From the IMG/VR virus record IMGVR_UViG_3300032236_002285, positions 372,001 through 436,000 of that record: a stretch of 64,000 bases of DNA; one strand, given 5' to 3'. A program made the translations under genes and the position numbers. Positions within the stretch are counted from its first letter, which is position 1; each line of letters starts with the position of its first letter. This document shows positions 1,324-52,372 of this stretch, piece by piece. Under the pieces are notes generated by a model, which was not told where the DNA came from, made no database searches, and saw only the letters and a list, made by a program, of their open reading frames with translations.

Positions 1324-2088
1324 ATGAAATACTTAAAAAGATTTAACGAAGAACTTAAACCAAGTACATATATGTCTGCTGCTAAAAAGCTAACAGCAAT
1401 TGGTCATACAGGTAGAGCCAATGCTCTAAAAGATTGGGCGAATGAAACTGAAAAAAGAGAAGAGATGTCTAAGTGGAAGGATCGTTTACAAGACTATGGT
1501 CTTTTTGGTTCTTATAAGATGAATATTGTTAATCCAGAAACTGAAGAAAAATTTACAGGTGATTTTTACTTAGATATTAATTTTGATGAAATGGCATTTG
1601 AGGATAGCTTTGAATATGAGAAAGAAAATAATCCAGATAATATTAAAGGTGTTTCTATTTTATTTTTTATTGGTTTAATTCCAACATCTGAAGAAACACT
1701 TAGAAAATGTATGGAGATTATGCCTTGTGCAGAGTTTGGTAATGGTATGTTCTGGGGTATGAGTTGTGGTTTAGACTTACAAATTCTAAACGATAGATTA
1801 ACATTTACTAAATTCAGTTTAGATGATTATGATGATAACCTATCAGGTAATGTTTCTTTTGCTGATAGAGCTTCTGCTGGTAAATTCAAAACTTTATTAA
1901 AGAATATATTTAGTAATCCAGAATTAAACTATCCAAGTGGATATACAGATGTTGAATATATGTACCAAAAATTAGAACAAGTAGTTTGTATTAGACAATC
2001 ATTCTCATCTGATTATGGATTTGAATTAAAACAAGTGGCTGATTTTATTAATGCTCAGTCACCAAATACAATGTATAAAACTATTTAA
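1324..2088 (+). CDS. N-tagged hypothetical protein, paralog family A
   Basis: Starts MKYLKRFNEE. Shares SAAxKLxxxGH, G-x-FY, FxG, RxxAxxFK and a terminal YK with 2440 and 4675. Confidence 0.8.
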   Translation: MKYLKRFNEELKPSTYMSAAKKLTAIGHTGRANALKDWANETEKREEMSKWKDRLQDYGLFGSYKMNIVNPETEEKFTGDFYLDINFDEMAFEDSFEYEKENNPDNIKGVSILFFIGLIPTSEETLRKCMEIMPCAEFGNGMFWGMSCGLDLQILNDRLTFTKFSLDDYDDNLSGNVSFADRASAGKFKTLLKNIFSNPELNYPSGYTDVEYMYQKLEQVVCIRQSFSSDYGFELKQVADFINAQSPNTMYKTI

Positions 2089-2089
2089 T

Positions 2090-2440
2090 ATGAAACACTT
2101 AAAGAAATATGAAACCTTTAGTCCATATGATGATGAGCCACTAACAAGAGCGGAAGAAATCTTTGGAAAACAAACAAGATTAGAAAAACAATTTTCTGAA
2201 ATTATGATAGATGGTTTATCTAGCGACGATGTTGATGTTGCTCACTATTGGTCTACAATTAATGCTATTGTGGTAAATATAAAAGAAGATAAACTTCTTG
2301 ATGAAACATCAATTAAAGAATTACAACACAGAGTAGTAGAAGGTGAAAACCCAACAGAAGTTATAAATGATATTTGTTCAAGAATAAAAAAGCCTACTAG
2401 TGAAGTACAAAGACTATTAAAAAAACTAAATTCATTTTAA
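2090..2440 (+). CDS. N-tagged hypothetical protein
   Basis: Start moved to the internal Met (MKHLKKYETF) just after the upstream stop codon. Confidence 0.75.
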   Translation: MKHLKKYETFSPYDDEPLTRAEEIFGKQTRLEKQFSEIMIDGLSSDDVDVAHYWSTINAIVVNIKEDKLLDETSIKELQHRVVEGENPTEVINDICSRIKKPTSEVQRLLKKLNSF

Positions 2441-3261
2441 TGAAACATCTTAAAAGTATTAATGAATTAAAATCAAGCACTTTTAGAAATGCTGCTACTA
2501 AATTGAAGCAGTTAGGTCATATTAGAAGAAGTCAAGAAATTGAATCTCATGCTATTGATGTTGAGGAGAGAGAAGAAAAAGCAAGAATTGAACAAAGAAC
2601 TAAATGGTTAAAAGAACAAGCACCATTTAGATTACAATATTATAAAACAAAATATAACTCAGCCACTAAATCACATGAAAAGGATTTATTATGTGAAGGT
2701 AACTTTTATATAGAACCTTCTTTTGATGATGGTTGGTTCTCAGATTCAGGATATGATTATAGAGGTGAAGGTGGTAGATATAGTTTATTTATGTACTTTG
2801 AATTTGGTACTACTCCAGCTGATGTGGAAACTGCAAATACTTGGAAATCAATTGAATCTAAGTTATCAGAAGAAGCATATGATGGAATTTATTATGGTAC
2901 AAGATTAGGTATTGAAATTATACCAGAAGGTAATGCTTCAGTTGTTTCTAATGGTAAATGTTACTGGGAGTCAAGAGATAATGATATTTTTATCTTTGCT
3001 AATAGATCAGAAGCTATGAGATTTAAGAAACTTTTAATAGAAGCTCTTGAAGGTAAAATTGAATGGGGTAAAAACAAATGGAATGTGAAAGGTATTATAT
3101 CTTGTTTTGATAGATACTTTTTAAACGATGCTAATTATATACAAAGAAAAATAGATAAAGGTGAAACTCCTGAAGAACCTCTTTTTACAAAAGAAGATAT
3201 GCCTAAATTAATTAACACTCTTAAAACAGGGTTAAGTGTAAATCAATTATATAAAAACTAA
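2440..3261 (+). CDS. N-tagged hypothetical protein, paralog family A
   Basis: MKHLKSINELKSSTFRNAATKLKQLGH; TAATG start/stop coupling. Confidence 0.8.
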   Translation: MKHLKSINELKSSTFRNAATKLKQLGHIRRSQEIESHAIDVEEREEKARIEQRTKWLKEQAPFRLQYYKTKYNSATKSHEKDLLCEGNFYIEPSFDDGWFSDSGYDYRGEGGRYSLFMYFEFGTTPADVETANTWKSIESKLSEEAYDGIYYGTRLGIEIIPEGNASVVSNGKCYWESRDNDIFIFANRSEAMRFKKLLIEALEGKIEWGKNKWNVKGIISCFDRYFLNDANYIQRKIDKGETPEEPLFTKEDMPKLINTLKTGLSVNQLYKN

Positions 3262-4190
3262 TGAGATATTTAAAAACATATGAACTATTTGGATTTGGTT
3301 CTAAGAAATCAAAAACTTGGCAAGAAAAGTTCCAAGACATATACAATTGGTATTTAAAGAATAAAGATAAAAAAGATATCCGATCTATTGATTTACCACA
3401 TGCTGATGTTAAAGATGACTCTTTATCAATATCACAAGGTTTAGATAATCATTTGGTTTTCTATGGTAAAATAAAAGGTGGTAACAGACATATGGAATTA
3501 GTTGATTTCTCTGAAGCTGATTATGCTGATCCAAAATCAACAAAAGGTGTTTATCCAATCACTCAAGAAGTTTATGATGAGTATGAGAAAAAGATTCAAG
3601 AGATATCAGATTGGTTAGATGCTAGAAGTGAAAAAGAGTTTGGTAAGTCAGATAGTATTATTTCAGATGATGGTGAATTAAACTTAGATTTTGATGAAGC
3701 GGATTTAGCTTTAGAAGAAATAAATGATAAGATAAAATCTGAATTAGATATCATTGGTAAAGAATATGAATTTGAAATGTCTTACCATCTTTGGACATCT
3801 AAATCAACAAATGAATTAATAGTTGAAAGAATACAATTAGCTATTGATGACTTAAAATTTGGTTTTGGTGGTAATAGATTTTATTGTCAATTATTCACAA
3901 AAGATCCATTCGGTGAAAGAGCTGATATCTGGTTAGAGTCATATTCCTCTTCAGAGTATTATGACTTTGATGAACACAAGTGGCCTTATAGTGATGATAA
4001 AGATAAGATTATTAGAATGTCAACTATTAAAAAAGAGATGACTAGAAAAGAAGAAAGAGATTTTGAAAAGAATAGAAAATATCCTTATGCTTTTGCTTAT
4101 GATATTACACCTTGTAAATGGGAATCTATGGAGCTAGTAAAAGAGATTACTTCTCTATTACAACAAATGAATGATAGTATAAAGAAATGA
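3261..4190 (+). CDS. N-tagged hypothetical protein
   Basis: MRYLKTYELFGF; translationally coupled to neighbours. Confidence 0.8.
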   Translation: MRYLKTYELFGFGSKKSKTWQEKFQDIYNWYLKNKDKKDIRSIDLPHADVKDDSLSISQGLDNHLVFYGKIKGGNRHMELVDFSEADYADPKSTKGVYPITQEVYDEYEKKIQEISDWLDARSEKEFGKSDSIISDDGELNLDFDEADLALEEINDKIKSELDIIGKEYEFEMSYHLWTSKSTNELIVERIQLAIDDLKFGFGGNRFYCQLFTKDPFGERADIWLESYSSSEYYDFDEHKWPYSDDKDKIIRMSTIKKEMTRKEERDFEKNRKYPYAFAYDITPCKWESMELVKEITSLLQQMNDSIKK

Positions 4191-4678
4191 GATACTTAGA
4201 AAAATTCAAATCATTTGAAAATGTTTCTGTTATAAATTCATATATTCAAGATATAAATGATATTTTACTAGAATTAAGTGATTATAACTGGGTTATTCTA
4301 GTTGACTATGTTCCAAAAAGATGGGAAAATCCAAGTGCAAACTATACAATAAAATCCGACTACATCGGTGTAGTTATCAAAAAGAAGCAAAATAAATCAC
4401 AATCAAGATATCCAGAAGGATCTGAGTTCAAATTCTCTGATGTTTCTGATTATATACATAGAATAGTAGATTATTTTATGACAAATGACTATAGAATTAG
4501 GATTTGTGAATTAAATAATGCTTGGTACAATGGTATGCCAGGTCACTCAGAGAAAGGTATATGGTCTGATTGGACCGATTCAGAGATGCCTGAATTAGAT
4601 AAAAACATTTTGGGCATAGAAATTAATATATACTTACAAGGTGCTAACCTTGACGATTTTAAATATAAATTTAGATGA
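4187..4678 (+). CDS. N-tagged hypothetical protein, paralog family B
   Basis: MRYLEKFKSFE; DINDILLELSD helix resembles segments in 5454, 5864 and 6309. Confidence 0.75.
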   Translation: MRYLEKFKSFENVSVINSYIQDINDILLELSDYNWVILVDYVPKRWENPSANYTIKSDYIGVVIKKKQNKSQSRYPEGSEFKFSDVSDYIHRIVDYFMTNDYRIRICELNNAWYNGMPGHSEKGIWSDWTDSEMPELDKNILGIEINIYLQGANLDDFKYKFR

Positions 4679-5454
4679 GATACTTAAACAAATATAATGA
4701 AGAGTTGAAGTCAGATGTTTATAAATCTGCTGCTGATAAATTAACAAAATTAGGTCATATTAAAAGACCTGAAGAGTTAATGAAGTGGCATGAAATCACT
4801 AAGCAAAAAGAAATTGATGCTTCTAAATTAGCAACTCTTAAAGATTGTGAACAAATGGGTGTTTATCAACTTTCTCTTTCATATAGAAAAGGTGGTCAAG
4901 ATTTTAAGTATAAAGGTGATTTCTATATCAATCTTTCTTTTGACGGCTATAATTTAGATGAACAATACCCAGAGTGGAAAGAAGGTCAAGGTAATCTTTG
5001 GATTAGCTTTAGTTTTGGTGTTATACCTGTAGATGATGAAGGTAAAGAGTTTTGTAAGAATGTAGTAGAATCAATAATCGGATTGGGTGGTGATAAAATA
5101 ACTTATTGGTTAGGTGCTTTTTGGTTAAATATAAGTAAATCAATAGAAATAAATCCTTCTACAGGATTACCAGCAGAAGAATTGAAATTCGTACCAGAAA
5201 ATAAAAGTTACTTTGAAGAGTATGAAGGTAGTTGGCACTTAGATAATAGAGCATCTGCTATAAAATTCAAAAATACTTTATATCAAATATTTAGTGGTGA
5301 TATTATTATAAGAGAAACACCGAGTGTTCCAGGTGGAATGAAAGAGCAAATAATAGATGAACTTTGTAATAATAGAGGTCACGATATTGATGAGTTTGAA
5401 GCTATTATGAACTCTATTAAAGTTCTGAATATAAATAAATTGTATAAAGATTAA
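4675..5454 (+). CDS. N-tagged hypothetical protein, paralog family A
   Basis: MRYLNKYNEELKSDVYKSAADKLTKLGH. Confidence 0.8.
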   Translation: MRYLNKYNEELKSDVYKSAADKLTKLGHIKRPEELMKWHEITKQKEIDASKLATLKDCEQMGVYQLSLSYRKGGQDFKYKGDFYINLSFDGYNLDEQYPEWKEGQGNLWISFSFGVIPVDDEGKEFCKNVVESIIGLGGDKITYWLGAFWLNISKSIEINPSTGLPAEELKFVPENKSYFEEYEGSWHLDNRASAIKFKNTLYQIFSGDIIIRETPSVPGGMKEQIIDELCNNRGHDIDEFEAIMNSIKVLNINKLYKD

Positions 5455-5867
5455 TGAAACACTTAAAAACATTTGAATCACTATATGAACTACCGGTTAT
5501 TTTAGAGTTAAAAGATATGGCTCTTGAACTAACTGATATGTTTTTTAATGTTCAAATATTCAAGGATAATCCAAAACAAAAGAACTATAACGGCATCATA
5601 GATGTTGAATATGATGTTAGTGTTATAATTACATATGATAAAGGTTTGGGAATTTTTGGATATGGTAACTTTACAATGATAGATGACTTAAAAAGTTTCT
5701 TATTCAGAGCTATCGGTTATATGAAAGATAATGGCTATCAATTTGAAACTCATTCAAATATGGGTAGCTTACATTTTACTGATGATGGTAGAGTAATCAT
5801 TTCCAGCGGTGAAGCAAGAGCAAACTACCCATCATTCACAATGATAAATATATTATTTAAAAAATGA
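5454..5867 (+). CDS. N-tagged hypothetical protein, paralog family B
   Basis: MKHLKTFE; ELKDMALELTD. Confidence 0.75.
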   Translation: MKHLKTFESLYELPVILELKDMALELTDMFFNVQIFKDNPKQKNYNGIIDVEYDVSVIITYDKGLGIFGYGNFTMIDDLKSFLFRAIGYMKDNGYQFETHSNMGSLHFTDDGRVIISSGEARANYPSFTMINILFKK

Positions 5868-6331
5868 GATACTTAAAAACATATGAAGGTTTGTTTGATT
5901 TCTTTAAGAAAAAGAAATCTAATAATGAATATAATGACATGATGGATAAGCAATCATATCTTAAAATTCATTTAGAAGATGTAAAAGATTGTTTTATTGA
6001 TTTATGCTCTTATAATTCTTATGATCTAAAAGCATTTATTAGTGGTGGTGAAATACAAGTTAATATTTATCCACTTAAAGATAAATTTATGAAACTTGAA
6101 GATTTGATGGAAACTTTTAGATTTACTGACTCATATATAACCGACTTAGGATTGAAAATTATTAGATACGAATTGTATATTAGTGGTAAATATGATGGTA
6201 TCAATTATATGGGAGATATCTATTATGATAAAATTTGGGAATTGGAACAAGCCCTGGATGAAGAAGGAACTAAACACATAGAAAGTTTATTAATAAGAAT
6301 TAAAAAATATGAAATACTTAAAACGATTTAA
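5864..6331 (+). CDS. N-tagged hypothetical protein, paralog family B
   Basis: MRYLKTYEGLF; EDVKDCFIDL. Confidence 0.75.
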   Translation: MRYLKTYEGLFDFFKKKKSNNEYNDMMDKQSYLKIHLEDVKDCFIDLCSYNSYDLKAFISGGEIQVNIYPLKDKFMKLEDLMETFRFTDSYITDLGLKIIRYELYISGKYDGINYMGDIYYDKIWELEQALDEEGTKHIESLLIRIKKYEILKTI

Positions 6332-6677
6332 TGAATCATCCGACTTTAATCCTGAAGAAATAATGAAAGAATTAACTCTTGAATTATTAGATGCTGGTTT
6401 ACAAGTTAATATTTATTCTGGTCAGTATAAATATTCTAATCATCCAAAATTTGAAGGTGAGTTACATGTTGAGATAACAGATAATGATAAAGTGTTTTGT
6501 AAAAACTATCCTGAAGATGATATGGATTGGTTATATGGTAAACCTATTATTATGAATTTCTTTGATGAACTAACCGATTTTGGTTTAATAAGAGACAAAG
6601 ATTATAAAGTATATGGTGGTGGACTAGGAGTTAATTTAGTCTTCCAGAAAGGTGGACTTAAAAAAGTTAAACTATAA
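6309..6677 (+). CDS. N-tagged hypothetical protein, paralog family B
   Basis: MKYLKRFNE; EIMKELTLELLD. Confidence 0.75.
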   Translation: MKYLKRFNESSDFNPEEIMKELTLELLDAGLQVNIYSGQYKYSNHPKFEGELHVEITDNDKVFCKNYPEDDMDWLYGKPIIMNFFDELTDFGLIRDKDYKVYGGGLGVNLVFQKGGLKKVKL

Positions 6678-6727: not shown

Positions 6728-7897
6728 ATGAAATTAAAAAGATATAATCAATTTTTAGAATCTAAATCTGATATGTGGGACATTATTCCACAATCAGTTA
6801 AAGAGTTACATGAATTATTTCAATCAGCTGGTAAGAAACTTTACTTAGTTGGTGGTTCAGTGCGTGACTTCTTAACTGGTGATAAGCCAAAAGATTTTGA
6901 CCTAGCAACTGACGCACTTCCGGATGAAGTATTAGAAATCGTTGGTGATCAATTTAGAACTAACCTTCAAGGTAAGGCATTTGGTGTAGTTGTTGTTTAC
7001 ACTAAAGAAGTTCCAGAAGGAATGGAGATTGCTACATTCAGACAAGATGTTAGTAAAGGTCGTAACCCAGAAGTTAAACTAGGTGTTACTATTGAAGATG
7101 ATGTTAAACGTAGAGATCTAACATACAACTCTCTTTTTTATGATTTAGATACAAGACAAATCGTTGACTTAGTTGGTGGTAAAGAAGATTTACAATCTGG
7201 TGTTACTAGAATGGTTGGTGATCCAATTGAAAGATTTGATGAAGATTCATTAAGAATTTTAAGAGCATTTAGATTTGCTTCAAGATACGAACATCCTTTA
7301 CATAAAGATACTGAGAAGGCAATTGAGAAAAGAAAACAACTTCAAAACATTGACCCAGAAACTGGTGAAATGAAAAGAATTTCTCAAGAAAGAGTTTGGG
7401 AAGAAATGAAGAAAGCTTGGAAACAAGCCAAAGATTATAGATACTATTTATCATTCTTTACTAAGTTTGATATGTGGGAAGAAGTATTTCCAGGTGCTAA
7501 CATCAATACTAACTTAGTTGATAGTAAAGATTTTGTAGTTGTTATTGCTAACTTATTTAAGAACGAAAGTCCTATTGGATTGGCTGACAAGTTGGCTCAA
7601 GAATATAAGATTGAATTAGAGTTGGCGACTAAAGTAGCTTTCTTAATTTCTTTATTAAATTTCAAAGTAGAAGATGTATTTGACATCTACAAGAAAAGAC
7701 AACAATGTGCTATCACTGATGCTACTATTTTAGAGTGGTTGAAAGTGGAAGGTATTGATACTAATGAACTAATTAAGTTTGTTGAATACAGACCAAGTGT
7801 ATCGGCTCAAGAACTAATGTCTCAAGGATTCAAGGGTAAAGAACTTGGAATTGAAATCAAAAGATTAGAGGTAGAAAAATTTAAACAAATGTTATGA
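6728..7897 (+). CDS. cca: CCA-adding tRNA nucleotidyltransferase (class II, PolyA_pol family) with N-terminal tag
   Basis: Motifs LYLVGGSVRD..KDFDLAT, EIATFR, RRDLTYNSL and EDSLRILRAFRF. N-terminus MKLKRYNQFLE. Confidence 0.9.
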   Translation: MKLKRYNQFLESKSDMWDIIPQSVKELHELFQSAGKKLYLVGGSVRDFLTGDKPKDFDLATDALPDEVLEIVGDQFRTNLQGKAFGVVVVYTKEVPEGMEIATFRQDVSKGRNPEVKLGVTIEDDVKRRDLTYNSLFYDLDTRQIVDLVGGKEDLQSGVTRMVGDPIERFDEDSLRILRAFRFASRYEHPLHKDTEKAIEKRKQLQNIDPETGEMKRISQERVWEEMKKAWKQAKDYRYYLSFFTKFDMWEEVFPGANINTNLVDSKDFVVVIANLFKNESPIGLADKLAQEYKIELELATKVAFLISLLNFKVEDVFDIYKKRQQCAITDATILEWLKVEGIDTNELIKFVEYRPSVSAQELMSQGFKGKELGIEIKRLEVEKFKQML

Positions 7898-8315: not shown

Positions 8316-9289
8316 ATGAGACATTTAAAAACATTCAAACTATTTGAAGAAGCGGTTCCGAAACCGTTAAAAAAGTTTCCTACAGAACCGGCTGTTCATT
8401 GGAATTATCTAATGAAAGTTCTAGAAGATGCTGGTATTAACCCACATGATGGTTTAGTGAAAGGACAGAGAGATACTTATTTTCAGGACTTTTTGCTAAA
8501 TGTGCTAGTAGAGATAATGTTGTTTTCCCTAATATGTTAGACATTGAAGGTTGGTCTAAAGAAGGTCAAAGTGATGCTAGATATAAGAATTTTATCTTTG
8601 GTGAATCTGTGTTTCTTTTACCAATAAGCTACGATGGTTCTAATGATGCGGTAGAAGCAGTTCAAAAGAAAAAGAGCTTTCTTGATAATATGAGAGATTT
8701 CGCCAGACAAATGGGTAAATCTAAAGCAGAGGAAGATAAGTTTGTTCAAGATGCTGAGAAACATACACATTTTGGACCAAGTGGATACGACTGGGCTAAC
8801 CCAGCACTTAAAGTTATTCATGATAAATTAGGACAATATTACAGGAATGATAAATTAAGAGTTTGGTTCCCTAAAGATAGAGATTATGATCCTTGGGAAG
8901 GTATGGACTATCCACATAAATATAATGTAGTTGGTGATTTAGATAGACCAAATGGTGTTTATTTCCTTTCTGATATTGAGAAGTTTATTGATGATAAATA
9001 TGGTATTAAAGATGAACTATTCTATAAGTTTATTATTGATAATCAATATATTGAAGGTCGTTATTGGGAAAGAGTTTGGTCTCTTTCAACTGAAGATGAA
9101 AATGGGAAAGATACTGGAAATAAACTTCAGAAATCCAACTTTGGTCAATATGGAATGGAACCAACTGAAAACATTCTTGATATGTTGAATATCATAGAGC
9201 ATGAGTTTGGTGATGAAATTCAATCAACTGATTATGAAGGATTCCCAATCTATGTAGATTATTACAAAAAAGTAGAACCAAAATATTAA
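8316..9289 (+). pseudogene. N-tagged gene split by a 1-nt frameshift in the T5 run at 8490-8494 (assembly error, pseudogene or slippage)
   Basis: The MRHLKTFKLFEE frame stops at 8540, while the downstream frame is open from 8450. One extra T gives a continuous ...YFQDFFAKCASRDNVVFPNMLDIEG... Confidence 0.6.
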
Positions 9290-9806: not shown

Positions 9807-10085
9807 ATGGAATTGTATAACTATTATAGCCTTGATGAATGTCCAGAAAGAAAGGTTATTAAAAAAAGACTAACACAACTTCAAGATGAAGGTAGAATTG
9901 AATTTGAAATAGATGGTGATGTTCTTAAATTAACTGATTTGGATTTAGATGAAAATGAAGTTGCTGAATTAATTGAAATGTTTGATAAATATGATGCTTT
10001 TCCTTATCCAGATTATGAAGAAGGATTGGATGATGAAGAAGAGGATGACGACTACTACGATAATTACGATGAAGATGATTATTAA
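9807..10085 (+). CDS. Small, highly acidic protein
   Basis: D/E/Y-rich C-terminal tail. Confidence 0.7.
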   Translation: MELYNYYSLDECPERKVIKKRLTQLQDEGRIEFEIDGDVLKLTDLDLDENEVAELIEMFDKYDAFPYPDYEEGLDDEEEDDDYYDNYDEDDY

Positions 10086-10097
10086 TACTTAATAAAA

Positions 10098-10682
10098 ATG
10101 ATTAAAATAGGAATTACGGGAGAAATGGGAAGCGGGAAAACCTTCTGTTCTAAGATATTTGAACAATTGGGAGTTCCTGTTTTTTATTCTGATGATATTT
10201 CAAAGTCTATAGTAAATACAAACAAAGCTTTGAAGCAAGAACTAACTCAAGAGTTTGGTAATATTTATGATGAAAATTCAATGATAGTTCCAAAACTACT
10301 AAGAGATATTGTATTTGTTAAAGGTGGTGAGCAAAAGCTAAAAATGTTGAATAAAATAATTCATCCTTATGTATTTAATGAATTTGAATTGTTCTGTAAT
10401 AAAAACTCTAGCAGTCCTTATATTATTGCTGAAACCGCACTTCTTTATGAAAGTAACATGAGAAGATATGTTGATAAAGTTATTTATGTTTGTGTAGAAG
10501 AGCAAACAAGAATCCAAAGAACATTCAAAAGAAGTGGTTATTCTGAACAAGAATATAAAGAAAGAATGAAATATCAGATTAATCCAGAAACAAAGAAAAA
10601 ACTATCAAATTTCATTATTTATAATAATGATGGTGATGATGTTAATAAACAAATTTTAGAAATACATAATACTTTAAAATAA
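10098..10682 (+). CDS. coaE: Dephospho-CoA kinase
   Basis: IGITGEMGSGKT Walker A; LNKIIHPYV, ETALLYE, IIYNN. Confidence 0.9.
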   Translation: MIKIGITGEMGSGKTFCSKIFEQLGVPVFYSDDISKSIVNTNKALKQELTQEFGNIYDENSMIVPKLLRDIVFVKGGEQKLKMLNKIIHPYVFNEFELFCNKNSSSPYIIAETALLYESNMRRYVDKVIYVCVEEQTRIQRTFKRSGYSEQEYKERMKYQINPETKKKLSNFIIYNNDGDDVNKQILEIHNTLK

Positions 10683-10714
10683 AAAAGACCAATCATTGAT
10701 TGGTCTTTTTTTTT
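10681..10714. terminator. Bidirectional terminator between convergent coaE and pit
   Basis: aaaaaagaccaatca-t-tgattggtctttttt. Confidence 0.85.
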
Positions 10715-10724
10715 ATTTTTAATA

Positions 10725-11786: not shown

Positions 11787-11798
11787 AATTTATTGTTT

Positions 11799-21232: not shown

Positions 21233-21463
21233 ATGAAATTTAAAATTGGAGATGTCGTAATTAAAACCACAGGTGGTAATAAAATGACGGTATCTGATAA
21301 TATAAAAGACGGTGTTTATAAATGCCTTTGGTTCGTTGAAAGTTCTTTAAACGAATCAATATTTAAAGAAGAAGATATCGTTACTCTGAGTGAGTATAAA
21401 AGATTTCTAAAAACAGAAGAAAGAGAAGATAAAATTAATCAGCTACTTAAAGATTCCAATTAA
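21233..21463 (+). CDS. DUF2158/YodC-like small beta-barrel protein with C-tag
   Basis: MKFKIGDVVIKTTGGNKMTV...CLWF; ends EREDKINQLLKDSN. Confidence 0.75.
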   Translation: MKFKIGDVVIKTTGGNKMTVSDNIKDGVYKCLWFVESSLNESIFKEEDIVTLSEYKRFLKTEEREDKINQLLKDSN

Positions 21464-22235
21464 CATTAGTTAATTTAGGTTCTGTATAAAGAGCACTAGA
21501 ATAGTACCCATCAAATACTTCTCTGTATTTTTCCATCCACTCATCAATATTAGGAATATTCATTTCTTCCATTTTTCTACCTAACCCAGTGGACATATAA
21601 GCTTGTAGCTCATCTGGTAAAACGTGATCAGCATAACCATATTCAGTGATACATTTAAACATAGAATCCTTAACAACACTATCACATTCATTATTTAATT
21701 GAGTCATTGCTGATTTATATTCTGGTAATGTAAAGTACATAGCATGAGCAAATTCGTGTTCAAGTAAATGATTAGCCAACTCATCAACACCTAAAAGATA
21801 ATAATTATGATCTCCCTCAACTTCTTTAATAGCTGATATAATAGATAACATTATTTTATCATAGGTATTAATTTCATCCTCAGGTACATTAAACATACAC
21901 TCTTCTAAAACATTAGATGGAATATTAAATCCAGACCAATCAGAACCATAAGTAAACTCTTGTTTACCATAATGTTGCTTGTAGATATCCATATACTTTG
22001 ATACCTTAAATTGTTTACCAATTATCTCATCAAATGCTGATTCATAAAACTCTTGAGATCTCATAAAAACCATAGCTCTAGAATGAGAATCATTAATCTT
22101 AACGGCCCAAATATGTTGACCACAATGATATAACTCAATTTTATTTAAGAAGTCTTCAGTTTTAGGAGCCAATAAGTGAGATGGGTCCGTAATTAATTTT
22201 TCTAAAAATAGTTTGTATGTTTTAATTATTCTCAT
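21447..22235 (-). CDS. N-tagged putative zinc metallopeptidase
   Basis: MRIIKTYKLFLE; HEFAH plus a downstream DELQAY. Confidence 0.65.
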   Translation of the reverse strand: MRIIKTYKLFLEKLITDPSHLLAPKTEDFLNKIELYHCGQHIWAVKINDSHSRAMVFMRSQEFYESAFDEIIGKQFKVSKYMDIYKQHYGKQEFTYGSDWSGFNIPSNVLEECMFNVPEDEINTYDKIMLSIISAIKEVEGDHNYYLLGVDELANHLLEHEFAHAMYFTLPEYKSAMTQLNNECDSVVKDSMFKCITEYGYADHVLPDELQAYMSTGLGRKMEEMNIPNIDEWMEKYREVFDGYYSSALYTEPKLTNVNWNL

Positions 22236-23305
22236 AATCTTGTATTATTTTTTAATGAATATAGTTTTATTATGTTTTTTTGTAATTTTTCACCAGAACG
22301 ATTGATTCTTTTTTGAATAAATGATAAAAACTTATCAACCGACATTGATCTAATAGCTTCTCCTGATAATGTAGGCTTATCTTGTTTATAAGCAATTGAC
22401 TCTTCTCTTCTATTTATTAACTCATTAGCGAGTCCGTTTTTCATTCTCTTCAACATCATATCAACATCAGCATCTGGATAAACACTTAGGATTTTATCAG
22501 ACATTTTTTGCTTAAAAGTTTTAGCATCAAATTCTTTCATTCTTTTTGCGAATCTCCAAGTTGGTGCTTTTTCTTTTACCTCTTCTATATCATATCTTTT
22601 AACATAAGGCCAAGCATCTTGAGTCATTGCGTTCATCTCATGTGGTTCACTCCAATAAATATAAAAGCCAATCTCATCATACCATATTTTCCAAATATCT
22701 TTTCTTATTTTAGCTCTATTAACATCTAAACCAAAAGTAACATCAGTTGATAACTGACCTTTATTTTTCTTCATTCTATTCCAACCTTCATATCCATGAT
22801 TTAACTCATGTGTTATAGAGGATTCAACTTCAATTGATAAACCCTCTCTATCATTAAATGAATCAGAAATAACAGCACCAATTTCAAGTACCAAGTGAAT
22901 AGTAACATCAGATCTATCATCAATACTAGGTCTAATTTCTGAACCACCTTCTTCTCCAATATTATAACAAGCACCAGTTCCAACAAATTTCTTTAATAAT
23001 CCTGTAGTTGGAAACCTTTTATTATAATTATCATCAGTCATTACTTTTATTGAATAAGTAACCTTCATTGATGAAATAGGGTATTTGGGCCAAAATTCAC
23101 TATTAATAAATAACGATAAGTCTTCTTTATTATACTCCTTTATAACTGAGTAATCTCTATTATCATTCTTATCGGCTAATTCATCTTCCTTAATAAATGA
23201 ATCAAAGCACTGATTAAACTCGTCTAATAGGAACTGATTATAAATTAGAGTAGCTTCTGCTACACCATGTGCTTCAAATAATTGATATGATTTTATATGT
23301 TTCAT
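22232..23305 (-). CDS. N-tagged putative zinc metallopeptidase
   Basis: MKHIKSYQLFE; HELNH plus a downstream EMNA; TAATATATA box 5 nt upstream. Confidence 0.6.
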   Translation of the reverse strand: MKHIKSYQLFEAHGVAEATLIYNQFLLDEFNQCFDSFIKEDELADKNDNRDYSVIKEYNKEDLSLFINSEFWPKYPISSMKVTYSIKVMTDDNYNKRFPTTGLLKKFVGTGACYNIGEEGGSEIRPSIDDRSDVTIHLVLEIGAVISDSFNDREGLSIEVESSITHELNHGYEGWNRMKKNKGQLSTDVTFGLDVNRAKIRKDIWKIWYDEIGFYIYWSEPHEMNAMTQDAWPYVKRYDIEEVKEKAPTWRFAKRMKEFDAKTFKQKMSDKILSVYPDADVDMMLKRMKNGLANELINRREESIAYKQDKPTLSGEAIRSMSVDKFLSFIQKRINRSGEKLQKNIIKLYSLKNNTRL

Positions 23306-23425: not shown

Positions 23426-23770
23426 ATGAAACTTGATATCAATGAAATTTACCACAATTATATTGTGAGAGTTGTAGTATTTGCTCTCTTTACTTTTAAG
23501 AGACAGATAAGACAACCTAATATTTATAAGATGTCTGTTATAGCTTTTACTATTAAAAGATTGCCTTGGAAAATTAATTTAGTAATTGATACAGGATTAA
23601 AACTAGATAAAGAAGATGAAAGAGAAATACTACTTAATGAAATATTAGAAGGTATTGAAACAGATTATTTATCAACCGTTACCGTTACATTTATCACACC
23701 ACTAAAAGAAGTTACTATGAGTGTGGATTTAAGTGATGAAGAAAAATACGAACACTATCTTTATTCTTAA
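23426..23770 (+). CDS. Hypothetical protein with an internal C-tag-like helix
   Basis: TAATATATA at 23411-23419; internal EREILLNEIL. Confidence 0.65.
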   Translation: MKLDINEIYHNYIVRVVVFALFTFKRQIRQPNIYKMSVIAFTIKRLPWKINLVIDTGLKLDKEDEREILLNEILEGIETDYLSTVTVTFITPLKEVTMSVDLSDEEKYEHYLYS

Positions 23771-30383: not shown

Positions 30384-31511
30384 TTATTTAGCTTCTTCGC
30401 CACCTAATTGTTTTTCAATTTCGGTTATCTTATCTTTATTTGCTTCTGGTTCTTGATATAGTTTAGCTATATCATCTAACTTTTTAATCGCTTCAGGATT
30501 TTTAGTTTTTACATCTGCTAAAGTTTTAACTAAATCTTCTTGACCTTCTGCTTTTTCAACCTCACCTTCAGCTTTCATAAGTATGTCAGCTATAGTTTTA
30601 GTAAAGTCAGCACCTTCAAAAGAAACTTTATCACCTTCAATTTTAGAAATCTTTTTAATTCCAATTTCATCAGTTTGAAGTTCTTTCATTTTACCTTCAT
30701 TTGTTTTTTTCTTATCGTCATCTGTTAAAGCATCCCATTTAGCCTGGTCAAATTTATCTCTTTTATAAACTACGGTATCACCTACTTTATAATCCTGAGT
30801 CGCACCCGCTCCACCAAATGTTATTTTTTTAGCCTCAAGATTTTTATTCAACTCGTCTATCGTTATAGCTTTTTCAAACTTAACCAATTGAGGAATTAAA
30901 GTTTTTTCAACCCAATTTATAATTGCGTCTTTTTTCTTTTTACCATCATTTGCTGCCGCTAATAACTTTTTAACATCAGGAAGATGTGTAGTATCCTTTA
31001 AGTCAACATTAATCTTTTTAGGATCAACTTTACCATCAGTTGGGCCACCAGCAAATTTATATTGAGCTATTGCCTTATTTCTAATTGTTTCAAAAACATA
31101 TTGAGTATCAGCAGGTAACCAGTTCATTGGTTCACCTTTTTTTGGTGGATATTTTTTATTAAGAGCATCTAACATTGGTTTTAATCCTTGTTTTCCTAAA
31201 GCACCTGTTTCTGGATTAAGTATACCATCAACAAGAGTTAAACAATCTTGATCATTAGCCTCTGGTCTTTTTTTGAACTCCTCCATTTGTTGTTTAAACA
31301 TATAAGAATCATCTGTTGGATTTAAGGTATTTGTGCTTATCCATTTTGTTATATCTTCTTGCTTAGGATTTGCACCAAGCTTGTCTAATTCGGCAATAGC
31401 TTTATTCCAAAGATTCTTAAAAAAGTTAATAACACCACCTAATAATTCTTCATTAACAGGCTCCGTGTTTTTTAGTTTTCTATGAGACTCGAATGTTTTA
31501 ATATACTTCAT
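30384..31511 (-). CDS. N-tagged Lys/Glu-rich protein, probably virion-associated
   Basis: MKYIKTFE...VNEELLG. Confidence 0.75.
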   Translation of the reverse strand: MKYIKTFESHRKLKNTEPVNEELLGGVINFFKNLWNKAIAELDKLGANPKQEDITKWISTNTLNPTDDSYMFKQQMEEFKKRPEANDQDCLTLVDGILNPETGALGKQGLKPMLDALNKKYPPKKGEPMNWLPADTQYVFETIRNKAIAQYKFAGGPTDGKVDPKKINVDLKDTTHLPDVKKLLAAANDGKKKKDAIINWVEKTLIPQLVKFEKAITIDELNKNLEAKKITFGGAGATQDYKVGDTVVYKRDKFDQAKWDALTDDDKKKTNEGKMKELQTDEIGIKKISKIEGDKVSFEGADFTKTIADILMKAEGEVEKAEGQEDLVKTLADVKTKNPEAIKKLDDIAKLYQEPEANKDKITEIEKQLGGEEAK

Positions 31512-42236: not shown

Positions 42237-42767
42237 TTATTTACAAGATTTTATAATAGAAGAAATCTCAGCTTTAATTTTACCTAACTCTTCATATCCT
42301 AATTCTTTAGGGAATTTATTACCTACTTTCTTAACACCAACATAGTCAGCTCTAAACATTACTTGACCAACGTGTTCATCACAACAATGAATCTCCAAGT
42401 CATCACCTACTTGTTTAGTTTTACAATCTTTATTTGATTCAATAATATCTTTGATTTTCTTTCTGAAAGAATCTCTCTTATCAGCTTTAACTTCTTTATG
42501 TTTATCTTTAGTTCTTACTGACTTCTCAGCAACACCTTCACCTAACCAACTTGGTTTGCCCATACCATCTTGCCAACCACCTTTTGAGTCAGAGTCATCA
42601 TATCTTTCATCATCTCTTGGATACATTCCATCTGGATCTTCTTTCTGAGATCTTTTTATTCTTTTTTCTCTTTTCTCAGCATCCTCTTTAGCTTTGTGTG
42701 GAAAATTAGAGATAGCTGTTTTTTCTGCTGGAGATAACTCCTCATTAAATCTCTTTAAGTATTTCAT
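42237..42767 (-). CDS. N-tagged charged protein
   Basis: MKYLKRFNEEL. Confidence 0.75.
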   Translation of the reverse strand: MKYLKRFNEELSPAEKTAISNFPHKAKEDAEKREKRIKRSQKEDPDGMYPRDDERYDDSDSKGGWQDGMGKPSWLGEGVAEKSVRTKDKHKEVKADKRDSFRKKIKDIIESNKDCKTKQVGDDLEIHCCDEHVGQVMFRADYVGVKKVGNKFPKELGYEELGKIKAEISSIIKSCK

Positions 42768-46727: not shown

Positions 46728-46731
46728 TGAA

Positions 46732-47169
46732 ATGAAACACTTAAAATCATATAAGATCTACGAAAGTGATAATGTTTGTACTACTTGTAACGGAACTGGT
46801 GAAGTAGATAGAGAGATTAATATGTGGGGTGATATGGGTAGATATGAGTGTGAGGATTGTAATGGAACTGGTAAACTAAGCACTCAATCATTTACAAAAG
46901 ATTTAAGATCATTCACAGATGAATCTCAATCAGAATTGAAATCATTACTGGATAAGTATGAAATAAAATACGGCGCTGTTTTACCTAAAGTTGAAAGATA
47001 TTCTGATAATCATGAAGATGTTGAGAAGGTAGAAATAGAAGCTCAGTTATACTCAACTTCTACATTAACTAAAGAATTACTTGAAGAAATAAATGAAAAA
47101 TATGTTGATTATAATATTCATTTTGATACTTACAATCACTTATATCTAATGGTTTATAAACTTTACTAA
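46732..47169 (+). CDS. N-tagged protein with a DnaJ-type CxxCxGxG zinc finger
   Basis: MKHLKSYKIYE; CTTCNGTG and CEDCNGTG. Confidence 0.75.
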   Translation: MKHLKSYKIYESDNVCTTCNGTGEVDREINMWGDMGRYECEDCNGTGKLSTQSFTKDLRSFTDESQSELKSLLDKYEIKYGAVLPKVERYSDNHEDVEKVEIEAQLYSTSTLTKELLEEINEKYVDYNIHFDTYNHLYLMVYKLY

Positions 47170-48848: not shown

Positions 48849-48850
48849 TA

Positions 48851-49096
48851 TTATCTAATTGGTTTGTAATTAGGAATAGCACCTTTGTAATTAGTGTTAC
48901 CTTTTCTGATTTCTTCATGTTCAGCTTCTACTGCTGCTTGATATTCAGGATCATTCTTTTCATCCTGTTTACAATTCATACAAATAACATCTTCATTAAA
49001 CATAGACATTGTAGTAACACCATTAGTTGGCTCACCACATCTATCACAGATAGATTTATTCATTTCAAATGATTCGTATGTTTTTAAGTGTTTCAT
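48851..49096 (-). CDS. N-tagged Zn-finger protein
   Basis: MKHLKTYESFE; CDRC..MSMFN..ICMNCK. Confidence 0.75.
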   Translation of the reverse strand: MKHLKTYESFEMNKSICDRCGEPTNGVTTMSMFNEDVICMNCKQDEKNDPEYQAAVEAEHEEIRKGNTNYKGAIPNYKPIR

Positions 49097-50943: not shown

Positions 50944-50960
50944 AAAAAAAGAATTAATAC

Positions 50961-50980
50961 TTTTAATATATATATTAAAA
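50961..50980. promoter_or_regulatory. 20-bp palindrome containing back-to-back TAATATATA boxes
   Basis: ttttaatatatatattaaaa lies between two divergent N-tagged genes. Confidence 0.75.
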
Positions 50981-50998
50981 TACTACATCACAAATCGA

Positions 50999-52372
50999 AT
51001 GAAATGGTTGAGAGGTTATAAATTATTCAAAGAAGCTAAGCAAGAAAAATCTTATAAGAATTTAATTAATGAGATATGTACTTGTATGGTACTCTTAAAC
51101 AATGAATTCTTAGATAATTTATTAGATAGAGGATTGAAAGCAAGATATTCTGAAAACTCAGAAATATTTGTTACTGACTTAAAAAATTTGTTATTAGCTA
51201 AGAATAGATTGAATTTAGGTAAGTTTGAAGGTGATACTTGTATTGCTGATGATGAGCTAGCAAAGGTTAATATGGCTTTTGATGGTATTGAGTTTGATAT
51301 TGAGAAAGATTGGGATAAATTAGTTTCTGCTAGAACAACTGCTAGAAATATTATTGATAAGTTATTATTAGATTCTAAACTAAAACCAGAGATGATTAAA
51401 AATATCTACTGGATTGGTCCTAATAAAGATACCGATCATGAGGAAGATATAGTTATAGAAGATAAAAATGGTCAACAATATAGTTTTTACTTAAATAAAA
51501 ATCTTGCTACACAAAAAACTGCTTCATTTAGTTTATTTGCTGATGACTTGATTGGTGCTGATATTGATAAATTATATAAAGATGAGTATTTACCTAAATG
51601 GGATAAATTAACTCAAGAATGGATTAGATTAATCTATGAGAATGCTAATAAAAATATTCAACAATTAATTGAGAAGTTTATTGACCCTAAAAGAATTGAT
51701 ACAATTGGTTATTTTGAATACTATGACATAAGACATAAAGACCCAAAATTCAAACACTTAGGTGAATTTGTTAGAGAGTTTGAAAAGAATATTTTAAAGT
51801 TTTCAGATTTAATGTCTGAAATATGGAAGAATAAAGATAATTGCTTTATGGACTCAAATAGAGTTACTAAGGAATGGATGGAAGTTAAAATAGTTATTCT
51901 TAACTCTAAAATTCTTGAGAATCTATTAACAACAAGTCTTAAATCAAATCATGTTGATGATATTCAAAAAGTTGAAGATAGTTGGAAATTGGCTGGTGGA
52001 ACCGTTAAGATGAAACTATTTAAGACTTTAGTTGAAAAAATGGGTTGTCTAGAAAGACCTGTTTACTTCTTGGGTAAAAATGGTGACATCTTTAATCTAG
52101 TCCCATCAAGAGAATTCTTTAGAGAAAACTATGATGACTTAAATATTAAATTTGATTATCATGTTAACTTTAATGTTAGTGACGAAGAAGAGAATAATGA
52201 TTTCACAATTAAAATAAAACTAGAGTTAGATGACAACACATTGATAGATATGTTTGTTATAGTTAAATTCTCTGGTGGTGAAATGTCTGGTAAATTATCA
52301 GCTAAATATAAATTTGATATCGCTGATAACTTTAATTATTTAATTTCCAAAAAACAATCTAGTGTTGAATAA
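50999..52372 (+). CDS. N-tagged hypothetical protein
   Basis: Start moved to MKWLRGYKLFKE, downstream of the palindrome. Confidence 0.75.
   Translation: MKWLRGYKLFKEAKQEKSYKNLINEICTCMVLLNNEFLDNLLDRGLKARYSENSEIFVTDLKNLLLAKNRLNLGKFEGDTCIADDELAKVNMAFDGIEFDIEKDWDKLVSARTTARNIIDKLLLDSKLKPEMIKNIYWIGPNKDTDHEEDIVIEDKNGQQYSFYLNKNLATQKTASFSLFADDLIGADIDKLYKDEYLPKWDKLTQEWIRLIYENANKNIQQLIEKFIDPKRIDTIGYFEYYDIRHKDPKFKHLGEFVREFEKNILKFSDLMSEIWKNKDNCFMDSNRVTKEWMEVKIVILNSKILENLLTTSLKSNHVDDIQKVEDSWKLAGGTVKMKLFKTLVEKMGCLERPVYFLGKNGDIFNLVPSREFFRENYDDLNIKFDYHVNFNVSDEEENNDFTIKIKLELDDNTLIDMFVIVKFSGGEMSGKLSAKYKFDIADNFNYLISKKQSSVE

Follow-up and report, generated by a model that had tools for sequence, protein, structure and literature searches.

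A shared N-terminal peptide on about one in ten proteins of a 476-kb freshwater phage looks like a greatly expanded version of the phage T4 capsid-targeting signal

Why should so many unrelated proteins of one phage begin with the same short peptide? The question arose from a window of 64,000 nucleotides (positions 372,001 to 436,000 of IMG/VR record IMGVR_UViG_3300032236_002285), part of a 476-kb phage of the Mahaphage group with a T4-type head, in which the initial annotation listed 20 genes with a common N-terminus and proposed that it is a modular tag loading many enzymes into the head for injection. The observation is confirmed, and proves larger than first described; the proposed meaning is partly supported. 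A profile of the first 11 residues, M-[KR]-[HY]-[LI]-K-x-[YF]-x-x-F-E, finds 62 gene starts genome-wide, 18 of them in the window, against about 1 expected. The feature is genome-wide rather than a property of the window, and the phage may load dozens of different proteins into its head, although this is inferred from sequence and structure prediction alone.

All 20 listed starts are real ATG-initiated ORFs on the strands given for them, and 18 carry the strict motif, scoring 14.9-28.3 bits with a position matrix built from the first 11 residues. At the left of the window a promoter-type box, TAATATATA (1293..1301, +), lies 22 nt before the first gene of a nine-gene tagged array. This first ORF (1324..2088, +; 254 aa; MKYLKRFNEELK; 21.3 bits) belongs to a paralogue family with the ORFs starting at 2440 and 4675, and has no PDB fold match. 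It is followed on the same strand by ORFs at 2090..2440 (116 aa; MKHLKKYETFSP; 19.3 bits; no Pfam family), 2440..3261 (273 aa; MKHLKSINELKS; 19.1 bits), 3261..4190 (309 aa; MRYLKTYELFGF; 23.7 bits; no Pfam family), 4187..4678 (163 aa; MRYLEKFKSFEN; 20.9 bits), 4675..5454 (259 aa; MRYLNKYNEELK; 17.3 bits), 5454..5867 (137 aa; MKHLKTFESLYE; 21.4 bits), 5864..6331 (155 aa; MRYLKTYEGLFD; 19.5 bits) and 6309..6677 (122 aa; MKYLKRFNESSD; 22.0 bits). A CCA-adding/poly(A) polymerase-family enzyme comes next (6728..7897, +; 389 aa), whose PolyA_pol head domain (E = 3e-30) starts at residue 38 and whose tag, MKLKRYNQFLES, is a shifted variant with a one-residue deletion and a core score of 17.1 bits. 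A 74-aa tagged ORF (8316..8540, +; MRHLKTFKLFEE) scores 27.3 bits.

Further along are two tagged ORFs on the opposite strand that contain HExxH, confirmed by inspection, at 21447..22235 (-; 262 aa; MRIIKTYKLFLE; 17.5 bits) and 22232..23305 (-; 357 aa; MKHIKSYQLFEA; 22.6 bits); all 114 homologues of the second start with a tag variant, and it has no PDB fold match. A P-loop kinase of the AAA_33/Zeta-toxin family (23767..25008, -; 413 aa) carries a weak tag, MRVINNFEGFINEE, that is borderline at 7.4 bits in full and 9.3 bits when shifted. The remaining members are ORFs at 30384..31511 (-; 375 aa; MKYIKTFESHRK; 19.9 bits), with an orthologue in the Mahaphage relative LR756502 that is also tagged; 42237..42767 (-; 176 aa; MKYLKRFNEELS; 21.3 bits); 46732..47169 (+; 145 aa; MKHLKSYKIYES; 22.5 bits), with a DnaJ-type CxxCxGxG zinc finger found by Pfam; 48851..49096 (-; 81 aa; MKHLKTYESFEM), a small zinc-finger protein with weak ZZ and Lar hits and, at 28.3 bits, the best score in the genome; 50311..50943 (-; 210 aa; MKTIKTYKQFKE; 18.3 bits), with a tagged orthologue in LR756502; and 50999..52372 (+; 457 aa; MKWLRGYKLFKE; 14.9 bits), with a 72% identical orthologue in LR756502. 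The domains named by the initial annotation were confirmed, by Pfam or, for HExxH, by inspection, although most tagged proteins have no Pfam family. Three further starts that it had offered as weaker cases (7894, 58663 and 60977) do not reach any threshold and are not supported.

Chance is excluded as the source of the motif. Genome-wide, 62 of 17,054 ATG contexts score at least 10 bits, against 1 of 35,232 ATA-codon control contexts; all hits lie at true ORF starts, and only 7 of 133,599 internal protein positions score that high. A search for shifted variants added 16 candidates, of which we count about 14 (control 1), among 621 crude gene calls. The tagged proteins are otherwise unrelated, with residues 15 to the end forming 57 BLAST clusters from 62 proteins, and in the LR756502 homologue of T4 RNA ligase 1 the tag is a roughly 22-residue N-terminal add-on relative to the T4 enzyme.

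The constraint is on the peptide and not on the DNA, because synonymous codons vary freely: codon use inside the tag matches that of other N-termini (His CAC 15, CAT 14; Leu uses six codons), and nothing is conserved upstream except a promoter box at variable distance. In two unrelated families with confident AlphaFold (AF2) models, represented by the ORFs starting at 1324 (mean pLDDT 87) and 23305 (mean pLDDT 90), the tag is predicted to be disordered and outside the fold, residues 1-8 having pLDDT below 50 and residues 1-11 no secondary structure. In the first family the tag is also the best-conserved segment, with mean column conservation across 120 homologues of 0.95 against 0.87 for the body, while in the second it is about as conserved as the body (0.78 against 0.72).

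Every Mahaphage relative examined has its own variant of the tag. There are 124 tagged genes in LR756502, and the variants include MKYLKLYEDFS in LR756504, MKYIKEYEEF in LR756500 and MIKKFKLFES in LR756501, as well as KKxLYES in Lak phage and MKTLSKLYEA on about 20 genes of the cultured Sphingomonas phage PAU. The same blind procedure recovers the internal proteins (IPs) of T4. By contrast, Tenacibaculum phage PTm1, with a related head module, has no tag. As with T4 internal proteins, tagged genes evolve fast: 39% have orthologues in LR756502, against 57% of untagged genes, with a median identity of 45% against 56%. The tag is nevertheless retained, at 0.61 identity against 0.40 for the body.

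Every test that could be run computationally favours comparison with the T4 capsid-targeting sequence (CTS). The phage encodes a T4-type portal (phrog_213), a Gp23 capsid protein (PF07068, 92 bits) and a head maturation protease (phrog_207, E = 1e-31) fused to a scaffold; a profile of the clade's protease domains hits the T4 gp21 structure 5JBL at E = 3e-8, with an invariant His and Ser. T4 IPII and IPIII start MKTYQEFIAE, in which published mutagenesis places targeting at residues 4 and 7 and processing at residues 8 and 10 (PMC9026906), and the K5-T6-Y7-x-x-F10 of the tag reproduces K2-T3-Y4-x-x-F7, including the aromatic pair at i and i+3. The scaffold is made of tandem repeats whose heptad, YSEY[IL]AE, matches the YQEFIAE of T4 at 5 of 7 positions, and its density of hydrophobic-x-Glu sites is the highest in the proteome. 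However, tag and scaffold repeats do not visibly co-vary between lineages.

Sites of the type expected for cleavage are also common in the tag. A hydrophobic-x-Glu site is held by 50 of 62 tags, against 35% of other N-termini, and the next residue is mostly Ser, Glu, Ala or Asn. A detail to correct is that there is no single fixed Glu; it lies at position 9 or 11 in most tags, and 12 of 62 lack such a site altogether. The commonest tetrads (IFES, LFEA, IFEA) are the same as, or close to, tetrads in the T4 scaffold protein gp22 (IFES, VFEA, LFES). The capsid protein has a conserved I/L/M-x-E-N site in the same N-terminal region as the LME-N of PAU, whose mature capsid protein is given by published N-terminal sequencing as 520 of 585 residues, which puts the cut at or next to that site.

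In PAU the sister tag sits on genes annotated as scaffolding (gp152) and internal capsid protein (gp142, gp154), and on small genes flanking the portal and protease. These annotations have no homology support in PHROGs and we could not trace their basis.

The initial annotation placed every tagged gene in a unit headed by one type of promoter box, and had named enrichment against promoter class as a check; the claim holds in substance. Tagged genes lie in units headed by T[AT]ATATATA boxes 59 times and in units headed by host-type TAnnTTTG boxes 2 times, while untagged genes split 224 to 221 (Fisher p = 5e-14). The T[AT]ATATATA class lies upstream of 34 tagged and 131 untagged genes, is the most enriched intergenic 8-mer, and heads the portal, protease, capsid, terminase and sheath genes. 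It is a phage-specific promoter-type box, but TAATATATA also heads nrdA and uvsX homologues, so that co-expression with heads is not exclusive and the description of the tagged proteins as 'late' is not shown. The emphasis on enzymes also needs correction, as the recognisable ones (CCA-adding enzyme, P-loop kinase, DeoC aldolase, RNA ligase) carry only weak or shifted tags and most cargo has no known family.

We hypothesize, with moderate confidence, that the peptide is a T4-type capsid-targeting propeptide, hugely expanded. In this view tagged genes are transcribed from the phage's own T[AT]ATATATA promoters together with the head genes, and the disordered tag, through its aromatic pair and the flanking Leu/Ile, docks each protein onto the scaffolding core while the prohead assembles, the core here being the C-terminal half of the protease-scaffold fusion, built from about 11 tandem YSEY[IL]AENLDKNI repeats. 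The gp21-family protease would then cut after a Glu in a hydrophobic-x-Glu site at the end of the tag, as well as cutting the propeptide of the capsid protein and the scaffold repeats, and the mature cargo would stay in the head and probably leave with the DNA at infection. What our analysis establishes is that the tag exists, is N-terminal only, is selected as a peptide, lies outside the (predicted) fold, sits on unrelated fast-evolving proteins, is conserved with lineage-specific variants across the clade, avoids host-promoter units and co-occurs with a T4-type head module; binding to the scaffold, cleavage, residence in the virion and injection are all inferred, for this phage as for its uncultured relatives. 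The number of tagged proteins (62-124) is far beyond any known set of head-internal proteins, and their mature parts are acidic (median pI 5.0), unlike the basic T4 internal proteins, both of which weigh against this reading.

Of the alternatives, it is possible though unlikely that the tag docks onto some other partner made in the phage-promoter phase, such as a chaperone, a degradation adaptor, a membrane site or another assembly, and has nothing to do with the capsid. A disordered, conserved linear motif fits any peptide-in-groove recognition, the promoter class is shared with non-structural genes, and so large a number of tagged proteins is easier to accept for a cytoplasmic hub. However, this does not explain the specific likeness to the T4 CTS core and to the gp22 cleavage tetrads, the PAU tags on and around head-module genes, or why the same blind method recovers the CTS proteins of T4. 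About equally improbable is that the tag does bring proteins into the prohead core, but only for assembly, as auxiliary core or scaffold components or size determinants that are degraded or expelled at maturation and not delivered to the next host. In T4, gp67, gp68 and gp22 are core proteins that the protease cleaves to fragments which leave the head (PMC5694885), the PAU gene annotated as scaffold carries the tag, and many tagged proteins are small and acidic. Against this, tagged sets include a Toprim domain, an OmpA-like peptidoglycan-binding domain, lysozyme, RNA ligase 1, and SET, GNAT and HNH domains, which make sense as enzymes acting in the next cell and not as scaffolding, and confidently predicted globular folds lie behind the tag.

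Two further readings seem very unlikely. The shared start could be a nucleic-acid feature, either an optimised translation-initiation region for leaderless or AT-rich mRNAs or a conserved promoter-plus-5'-end cassette mediating recombinational gene shuffling, as PeSL cassettes do in T4-type phages (PMC2839356); promoter boxes often lie only 4-7 nt before the ATG, tag-coding regions cross-match at 70-93% DNA identity, and tagged genes cluster in arrays (20 adjacent pairs against 6 expected). Yet synonymous sites in the tag vary as freely as elsewhere, substitutions are amino-acid-conservative (K/R, H/Y, L/I, Y/F), tags are kept across genomes of 24-32% GC with lineage-specific peptide variants, tagged genes occur at both box spacings and inside operons without any box, and untagged genes use the same promoters. 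That the tagged proteins are one expanded paralogous family with a well-conserved N-terminal remnant finds some support in the tandem arrays and in paralogues (the ORFs at 1324, 2440 and 4675, plus the gene G000:53888 and the window ORF at 42767, share a further STY-x-AA-x-KL motif), but is opposed by the 57 clusters among 62 proteins, the known unrelated domains behind the tag and the two different predicted folds that exclude it.

The closest known system is the CTS of T4 internal proteins IPI, IPII, IPIII and Alt (Mullaney and Black 1996, as reviewed in PMC9026906 and PMC3012670). Both are short N-terminal peptides on otherwise unrelated, fast-evolving proteins of a phage with gp20/gp21/gp22/gp23-type head assembly, both have the core K-T-[YF]-x-x-F followed by a hydrophobic-x-Glu site, and the T-even internal proteins are described as diverse anti-defence proteins that share only the CTS. 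They differ in scale, with 62-124 genes, or 8-12% of the proteome, against 3-4 in T4; in the four extra residues (M-K-H-L) that precede the shared core; in the unfixed Glu and acidic cargo; in a scaffold that is fused to the protease and built of tandem CTS-like repeats; and in that the T4 case rests on experimental proof, ours on sequence and prediction. The phiKZ-like giant phages (SPN3US, phiKZ, 201phi2-1; PMC5694885) also pack many proteins in the head, with N-terminal propeptides of head and ejection proteins removed after Glu by a gp21-related protease, and the paralogues gp53 and gp54 share an identical 15-residue N-terminus that the authors note is CTS-like. Those propeptides, however, are mostly 80-160 residues long and are not one shared motif across dozens of families, and eight of about 50 SPN3US head proteins are processed, whereas here a single 11-residue motif recurs on 57 families.

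The PAU tag (MKT[LI][ST]xL[YF]E[AS]), for which we found no published description, is a sister system in a cultured phage with a Gp23-type capsid. It ends in L-[YF]-E, but the sequence in front of the Glu differs, the tagged genes are concentrated in the head module rather than dispersed, and the scaffold is a separate tagged protein and not a protease fusion with repeats. The PeSL mobile regulatory cassettes of T4-type phages (PMC2839356, PMC4122927) likewise involve conserved short sequences, including a promoter, at the boundaries of variable genes in plastic genome regions, but PeSLs are non-coding DNA elements, while the conserved part described here is coding and is constrained at the amino-acid level.

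The genome that contains the window is a 476,236-bp IMG/VR virus record with 30% G+C, estimated to be 97% complete; it is classed there as a 'provirus' although it encodes a T4-type head, and no host flank was seen, albeit without a systematic search. Its major capsid protein is 69% identical to that of the 642-kb uncultured phage LR756502, 52-54% identical to those of LR756501/LR756503 (735 kb) and LR756504, 35% to that of LR756500, and 25-29% to those of Lak phages, Tenacibaculum phage PTm1 and Sphingomonas phage PAU. The LR records are the huge phages of the 'Clades of huge phages' study (PMC7162821). We take this group to be that study's 'Mahaphage' clade. Homologues of its genes are common in freshwater metagenomes, and one homologue (P0127) of the tagged protein at window 22232-23305 lies on a JGI contig of 816,658 bp, suggesting a relative with an even larger genome than the 735-kb record.

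The initial annotation reported a shared N-terminal peptide on 20 ORFs of the window, and this observation holds: all 20 starts are real, and 18 match the strict motif. We built a position matrix from the first 11 residues and scanned every ATG in all six frames of the whole genome, with genes called crudely as the first ATG of ORFs of at least 50 aa after greedy removal of overlaps. Sixty-two sites score at least 10 bits and open ORFs of at least 50 aa, whereas the same scan of 35,232 ATA-codon contexts gives one such site, and inside proteins the motif occurs only 7 times in 133,599 positions. Allowing the core to shift by one to three residues adds 16 candidates, of which we count about 14, against 1 in the control; these include the CCA-adding enzyme that starts at 6728 and, marginally, the P-loop kinase that starts at 25008. 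Three further starts that had been proposed as weaker cases (7894, 58663 and 60977) do not qualify. The consensus is M-[KR]-[HY]-[LI]-K-x-[YF]-[ENK]-x-F-E. The feature therefore covers about 10-12% of the predicted proteome and is not special to the window.

The constraint is on the peptide. Within the tag, synonymous codons are used as in other N-termini and in gene bodies (His is CAC 15 times and CAT 14 times, and Leu uses six codons), while the variable positions alternate between similar amino acids (K/R, H/Y, L/I, Y/F). Upstream of the ATG, information content is near zero apart from a promoter-like box at variable distance. On this evidence from synonymous sites and upstream sequence, the tag does not behave as a PeSL-like mobile regulatory cassette, in which conservation would be expected at the nucleotide level independent of coding, with a promoter plus stem-loop. 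Nor does its sequence resemble a Sec/Tat or lipoprotein signal, since it alternates Lys, Glu and aromatic residues and lacks the hydrophobic core of about 10-15 residues after a short basic N-region; signal-like N-termini such as MKKLLFIILLLV form a separate group in the same clustering.

With the first 14 residues removed, all-against-all BLAST places the 62 proteins in 57 clusters, 57 of the 62 being counted as singletons or members of small clusters, and Pfam or PHROGs recognise only a few domains. In this genome these are a Toprim domain (positions 252984-253577 of the whole record), an OmpA-like domain, a DeoC aldolase with a weak tag, a DnaJ-type zinc finger, the CCA-adding enzyme and an AAA_33/Zeta kinase. 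In LR756502 they are a T4-type lysozyme, an RNA ligase 1, SET, GNAT, HNH and Toprim domains, and a carbohydrate-binding module. In the RNA ligase homologue the tag and a linker precede the region that aligns with T4 Rnl1 from its residue 9, so the tag is an add-on. We modelled two unrelated tagged families with AlphaFold2 on alignments of metagenomic homologues, obtaining mean pLDDT of 87 and 90. In both models residues 1-8 have pLDDT below 50 and the first 11-12 residues have no predicted secondary structure, while the two bodies differ in secondary-structure layout, with the tag outside both. In the first family the tag is also the best-conserved stretch (0.95 against 0.87 for the body); in the second, all 114 homologues begin with an allowed variant of it, and the tag is about as conserved as the body (0.78 against 0.72). 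This is the behavior of a linear recognition motif or propeptide. Foldseek against the PDB gave no match with E below 0.04 for either model, and so provided no clue to the function of these two cargo families.

To examine relatives we used a blind test that counts pairs of N-termini sharing at least 6 of 11 residues, with residues 31-42 as control. It gives 268 pairs against 2 in this genome, 1263 against 10 in LR756502, and 124 against 13, 270 against 11 and 67 against 3 in the first 400 kb of LR756504, LR756500 and LR756501, respectively. It gives 38 against 2 in 400 kb of Lak-B5, 110 against 1 in PAU, 9 against 2 in T4 and 2 against 1 in PTm1. Iterated matrices then identify 52-62 tagged genes in this genome and 116-124 in LR756502, both with the consensus MK[HY]LKxYxxFE; 27 in LR756504 (MKYLKLYEDFS), 33 in LR756500 (MKYIKEYEEF) and 15 in LR756501 (MIKKFKLFES), each over 400 kb; 6 or more in 400 kb of Lak-B5 (..KKxLYES); 20 in PAU (MKTLSKLYEA); 4 in T4 (IPII, IPIII, IPI and gp61.1); and none convincing in PTm1. 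T4 serves as a positive control, because the method recovers its known capsid targeting sequence (CTS) proteins. The remaining T4 member, the hypothetical 54-aa gp61.1 (NC_000866: 18966-19130), starts MKTFKEFIKEDM, a CTS-like N-terminus close to that of IPI (MKTFKEFTST), yet it is not annotated as an internal protein. Prevotella phage Lak-B5 (MK250024: 228364-230438 and others) has two N-terminal motif groups, ..QKKxLYESIM.. and MK[VI]Q[VI]R[RHK]xVFETNSSSTHS, the second on four adjacent paralogues. Between this genome and LR756502, tagged genes are less often conserved than untagged ones (39% against 57% with reciprocal best hits) and more diverged (45% against 56% median identity). Where orthologues exist, however, the tag is retained and is more conserved than the body (0.61 against 0.40; 17 of 21 pairs).

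The genome encodes a T4-type portal (phrog_213), a Gp23-family capsid protein (PF07068, 92 bits) and a 720-aa protein whose N-terminal 310 residues are a head maturation protease (phrog_207). The Pfam model PF03420 alone is below its cut-off for this protease (22.9 against 27 bits), and a phmmer search of the PDB with the single domain returned nothing. A profile of the domain from seven phages, with T4 left out, has T4 gp21 as its best PDB match (5JBL, E = 3e-8), and the alignment contains an invariant His73 and Ser128 that we interpret as catalytic. The protease is fused to a C-terminal scaffold half (fusion at 59876-62038 of the whole record, outside the window, or 9876-12035 of the record's locus L017) containing about 11 tandem copies of the 14-aa repeat YSEY[LI]AENLDKNIx (period 42 nt; L017:10739-11186), followed by an acidic His/Glu-rich stretch. 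This scaffold half has the highest density of hydrophobic-x-Glu triplets in the proteome (6.1 per 100 residues against a median of 2.0). The same repeats, counted by eye in relatives, are present in LR756502, LR756501 and LR756504 and degenerate in LR756500, while PTm1, which has no tag, has a different repeat; no co-variation of tag and scaffold between lineages is evident. An endonuclease VII-like gene (phrog_1035) and reversed-strand genes interrupt the portal-protease interval of the head module (56204-59691 of the record). The capsid protein's N-terminal propeptide carries a conserved [ILM]-x-E-N site (INE-N at residues 41-44 here), in the same region as PAU's LME-N. N-terminal sequencing reported for PAU gives a mature protein of 520 of 585 residues, which places the cut at or next to that site (PMC5646251), and the prohead proteases of T4, phiKZ and SPN3US all cut after Glu in a short motif (PMC5694885).

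T4 IPII and IPIII start MKTYQEFIAE, and published suppressor analysis assigns targeting mainly to residues 4 and 7 and processing to residues 8 and 10 (PMC9026906). The tag's K5-T6-[YF]7-x-x-F10 reproduces K2-T3-Y4-x-x-F7; position 7 is Y or F in 51 of 56 seed tags and position 10 is F or Y in 34 of 56, the aromatic spacing of Tyr4 and Phe7 in T4, although this is a resemblance in sequence only. Fifty of 62 tags contain hydrophobic-x-Glu within the first 16 residues, against 35% of other N-termini (p = 4e-12), with the Glu mostly at position 9 or 11 and followed by Ser, Glu, Ala or Asn. The commonest tetrads (IFES, FNES, LFEA, IFEA) are the same as, or close to, those in the T4 scaffold protein gp22, the classic gp21 substrate, which reads LIAEA, IFES, VFEA, LAES, IAEK, LAEN and LFES. 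The scaffold repeat heptad YSEY[IL]AE matches T4's YQEFIAE at five of seven positions, including all four functionally mapped ones with F/Y and I/L exchanges. This last point is a seven-residue resemblance and is a lead rather than proof, but it does suggest that a CTS works by imitating a scaffold segment.

The cultured phage PAU provides a bridge. Here 16-20 genes (JQ362498: 100248-113735 and scattered) start MK[TS][LI][ST]x[L][YF]E, often followed by KLNEA. They include gp152 (annotated 'scaffolding'), gp142 and gp154 (annotated 'internal capsid protein'), gp149 and gp150 between the portal and protease, which is the position of T4 gp67 and gp68, as well as gp153, gp131-133 and gp143-146. 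These annotations come without a stated basis from the depositors; a PHROGs search with ten tagged PAU proteins gave no support by homology, and the PAU capsid paper does not mention them.

Two box types dominate the intergenic regions, T[AT]ATATATA (for example at window 1293-1301) and TAnnTTTG. The latter is the -7 element of Bacteroidota housekeeping promoters, and occurs in the window upstream of 12965, 15168, 25086, 26706 and 33407, among others; it heads about half of the classifiable untagged genes, pointing to a Bacteroidota host and a gene class dependent on host RNA polymerase. Both classes sit at two preferred distances from the ATG, 4-7 nt and about 19-28 nt, the shorter of which implies that many mRNAs are leaderless or nearly so. 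Assigning each gene to the nearest upstream box in its co-directional run, with units inferred by a simple walk along each strand, gives 59 tagged genes in T[AT]ATATATA units and 2 in TAnnTTTG units, whereas untagged genes split 224 to 221 (p = 5e-14). Counting only genes with their own box gives 34 to 2 against 131 to 77. The T[AT]ATATATA box precedes the portal, protease-scaffold, capsid, terminase, sheath, gp4-like and gp25-like genes, but also nrdA and uvsX homologues (T4 gene names being assigned from ORF lengths and the T4 map). It is therefore a phage-specific class shared with head genes, but it is not shown to be late, as the initial annotation had described the tagged proteins. In the window, the galE-like and prs-like block at 31.6-37.4 kb is untagged and partly in a host-type unit, and the coaE-like and folA genes are untagged in phage-type units. 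No RNA run was found to hold the window itself; two freshwater RNA libraries hold only fragments from relatives at 80-95% identity, most of which pile up on the tag-coding region because many different genes share it; no transcript starts could be called, and DNA carry-over cannot be excluded.

The best-supported reading, which we hold with moderate confidence, is a T4-type capsid-targeting propeptide expanded to proteome scale. In this view the tag docks cargo on the scaffold core during prohead assembly, the gp21-family protease clips it after Glu, and the cargo remains in the head and probably enters the next host with the DNA. The analysis itself establishes an N-terminal peptide under selection as a peptide, carried by unrelated proteins, retained with lineage-specific variants among relatives, largely absent from host-type promoter units and accompanied by a T4-type head module; docking, cleavage, residence in proheads and virions, and ejection with the DNA are inferred from sequence and by analogy with T4. 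For any ability of the tag to package a foreign protein there is only the natural experiment of one tag on 57 families and its appearance as an add-on to an RNA ligase 1 homologue. The earlier proposal that such a tag loads many enzymes into the head for delivery at infection is thus supported in part. Against the capsid-targeting reading stand the sheer number of tagged proteins, their acidic mature parts (median pI 5.0), the 12 tags without a clear cleavage site, the non-exclusive promoter class and the lack of any virion data, no proteome having been found for this uncultured phage. The less likely alternatives are that tagged proteins have a role in core assembly without delivery, or that the tag is a docking peptide for another partner. 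A translation or recombination artefact at the nucleic-acid level is very unlikely, a constraint at the DNA level being rejected by the free variation of synonymous sites and the lack of upstream conservation beyond the box. A single paralogous family is rejected by the 57 clusters of bodies and the different Pfam domains behind the tag.

The T4 CTS, and the idea that T-even internal proteins share only a CTS, are established. A literature search found no description of a shared tag in Mahaphages or other huge phages, Lak phages or PAU. Relative to T4, the system described here has the same logic, a recognizably related peptide and the same machinery, but is 15-30 times larger in scale, clade-wide in the largest known phages, and coupled to a scaffold built of CTS-like repeats. 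It is tempting to speculate that huge Bacteroidota phages of the Mahaphage group use one short address peptide to load on the order of 60-120 different proteins into each head, making the virion a mass effector-delivery vehicle. The peptide would mimic the scaffold's own tandem repeat unit (YSEY[IL]AE, the same heptad type as T4's YQEFIAE), so that cargo co-polymerizes with the core and is released by the same protease cuts, and the injected protein set of an uncultured phage could then be read from sequence alone. This extended reading is not excluded, but it remains tentative and in our estimate is less likely than not.

If the tag is a packaging address, about a tenth of the genes of the largest known phages, most of them without known function, would gain a shared cellular address in one step, and would become candidates for the first proteins to act in the host, in anti-defence, host takeover and cell-wall passage. 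Cargo domains such as lysozyme, an OmpA-like peptidoglycan binder, RNA ligase 1, SET, GNAT, HNH and Toprim fit that picture. It would help explain what huge phages do with their very large capsids and genomes, would extend a mechanism known from three or four T4 proteins to a proteome-scale system, and would give a simple sequence rule for predicting injected proteins in metagenomic phages. The tag could also serve as a portable packaging signal for engineering phages of Bacteroidota. The tandem CTS-like repeats of the scaffold suggest how a CTS is recognized, which is still unresolved in T4, and PAU, being cultured, offers an immediate experimental system.

A GIY-YIG (I-TevI-like) homing endonuclease homologue (window 39727-40455, minus strand) lies next to folA (assigned from ORF length and the T4 map). 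The first ~100 nt of the window (1-106) belong to a repeat family of ~100-nt units at 67-81% identity, which are tandem at the start of the record (1-2200) and dispersed at a few other sites (152.6-153.3 kb and 369.6-372.0 kb).
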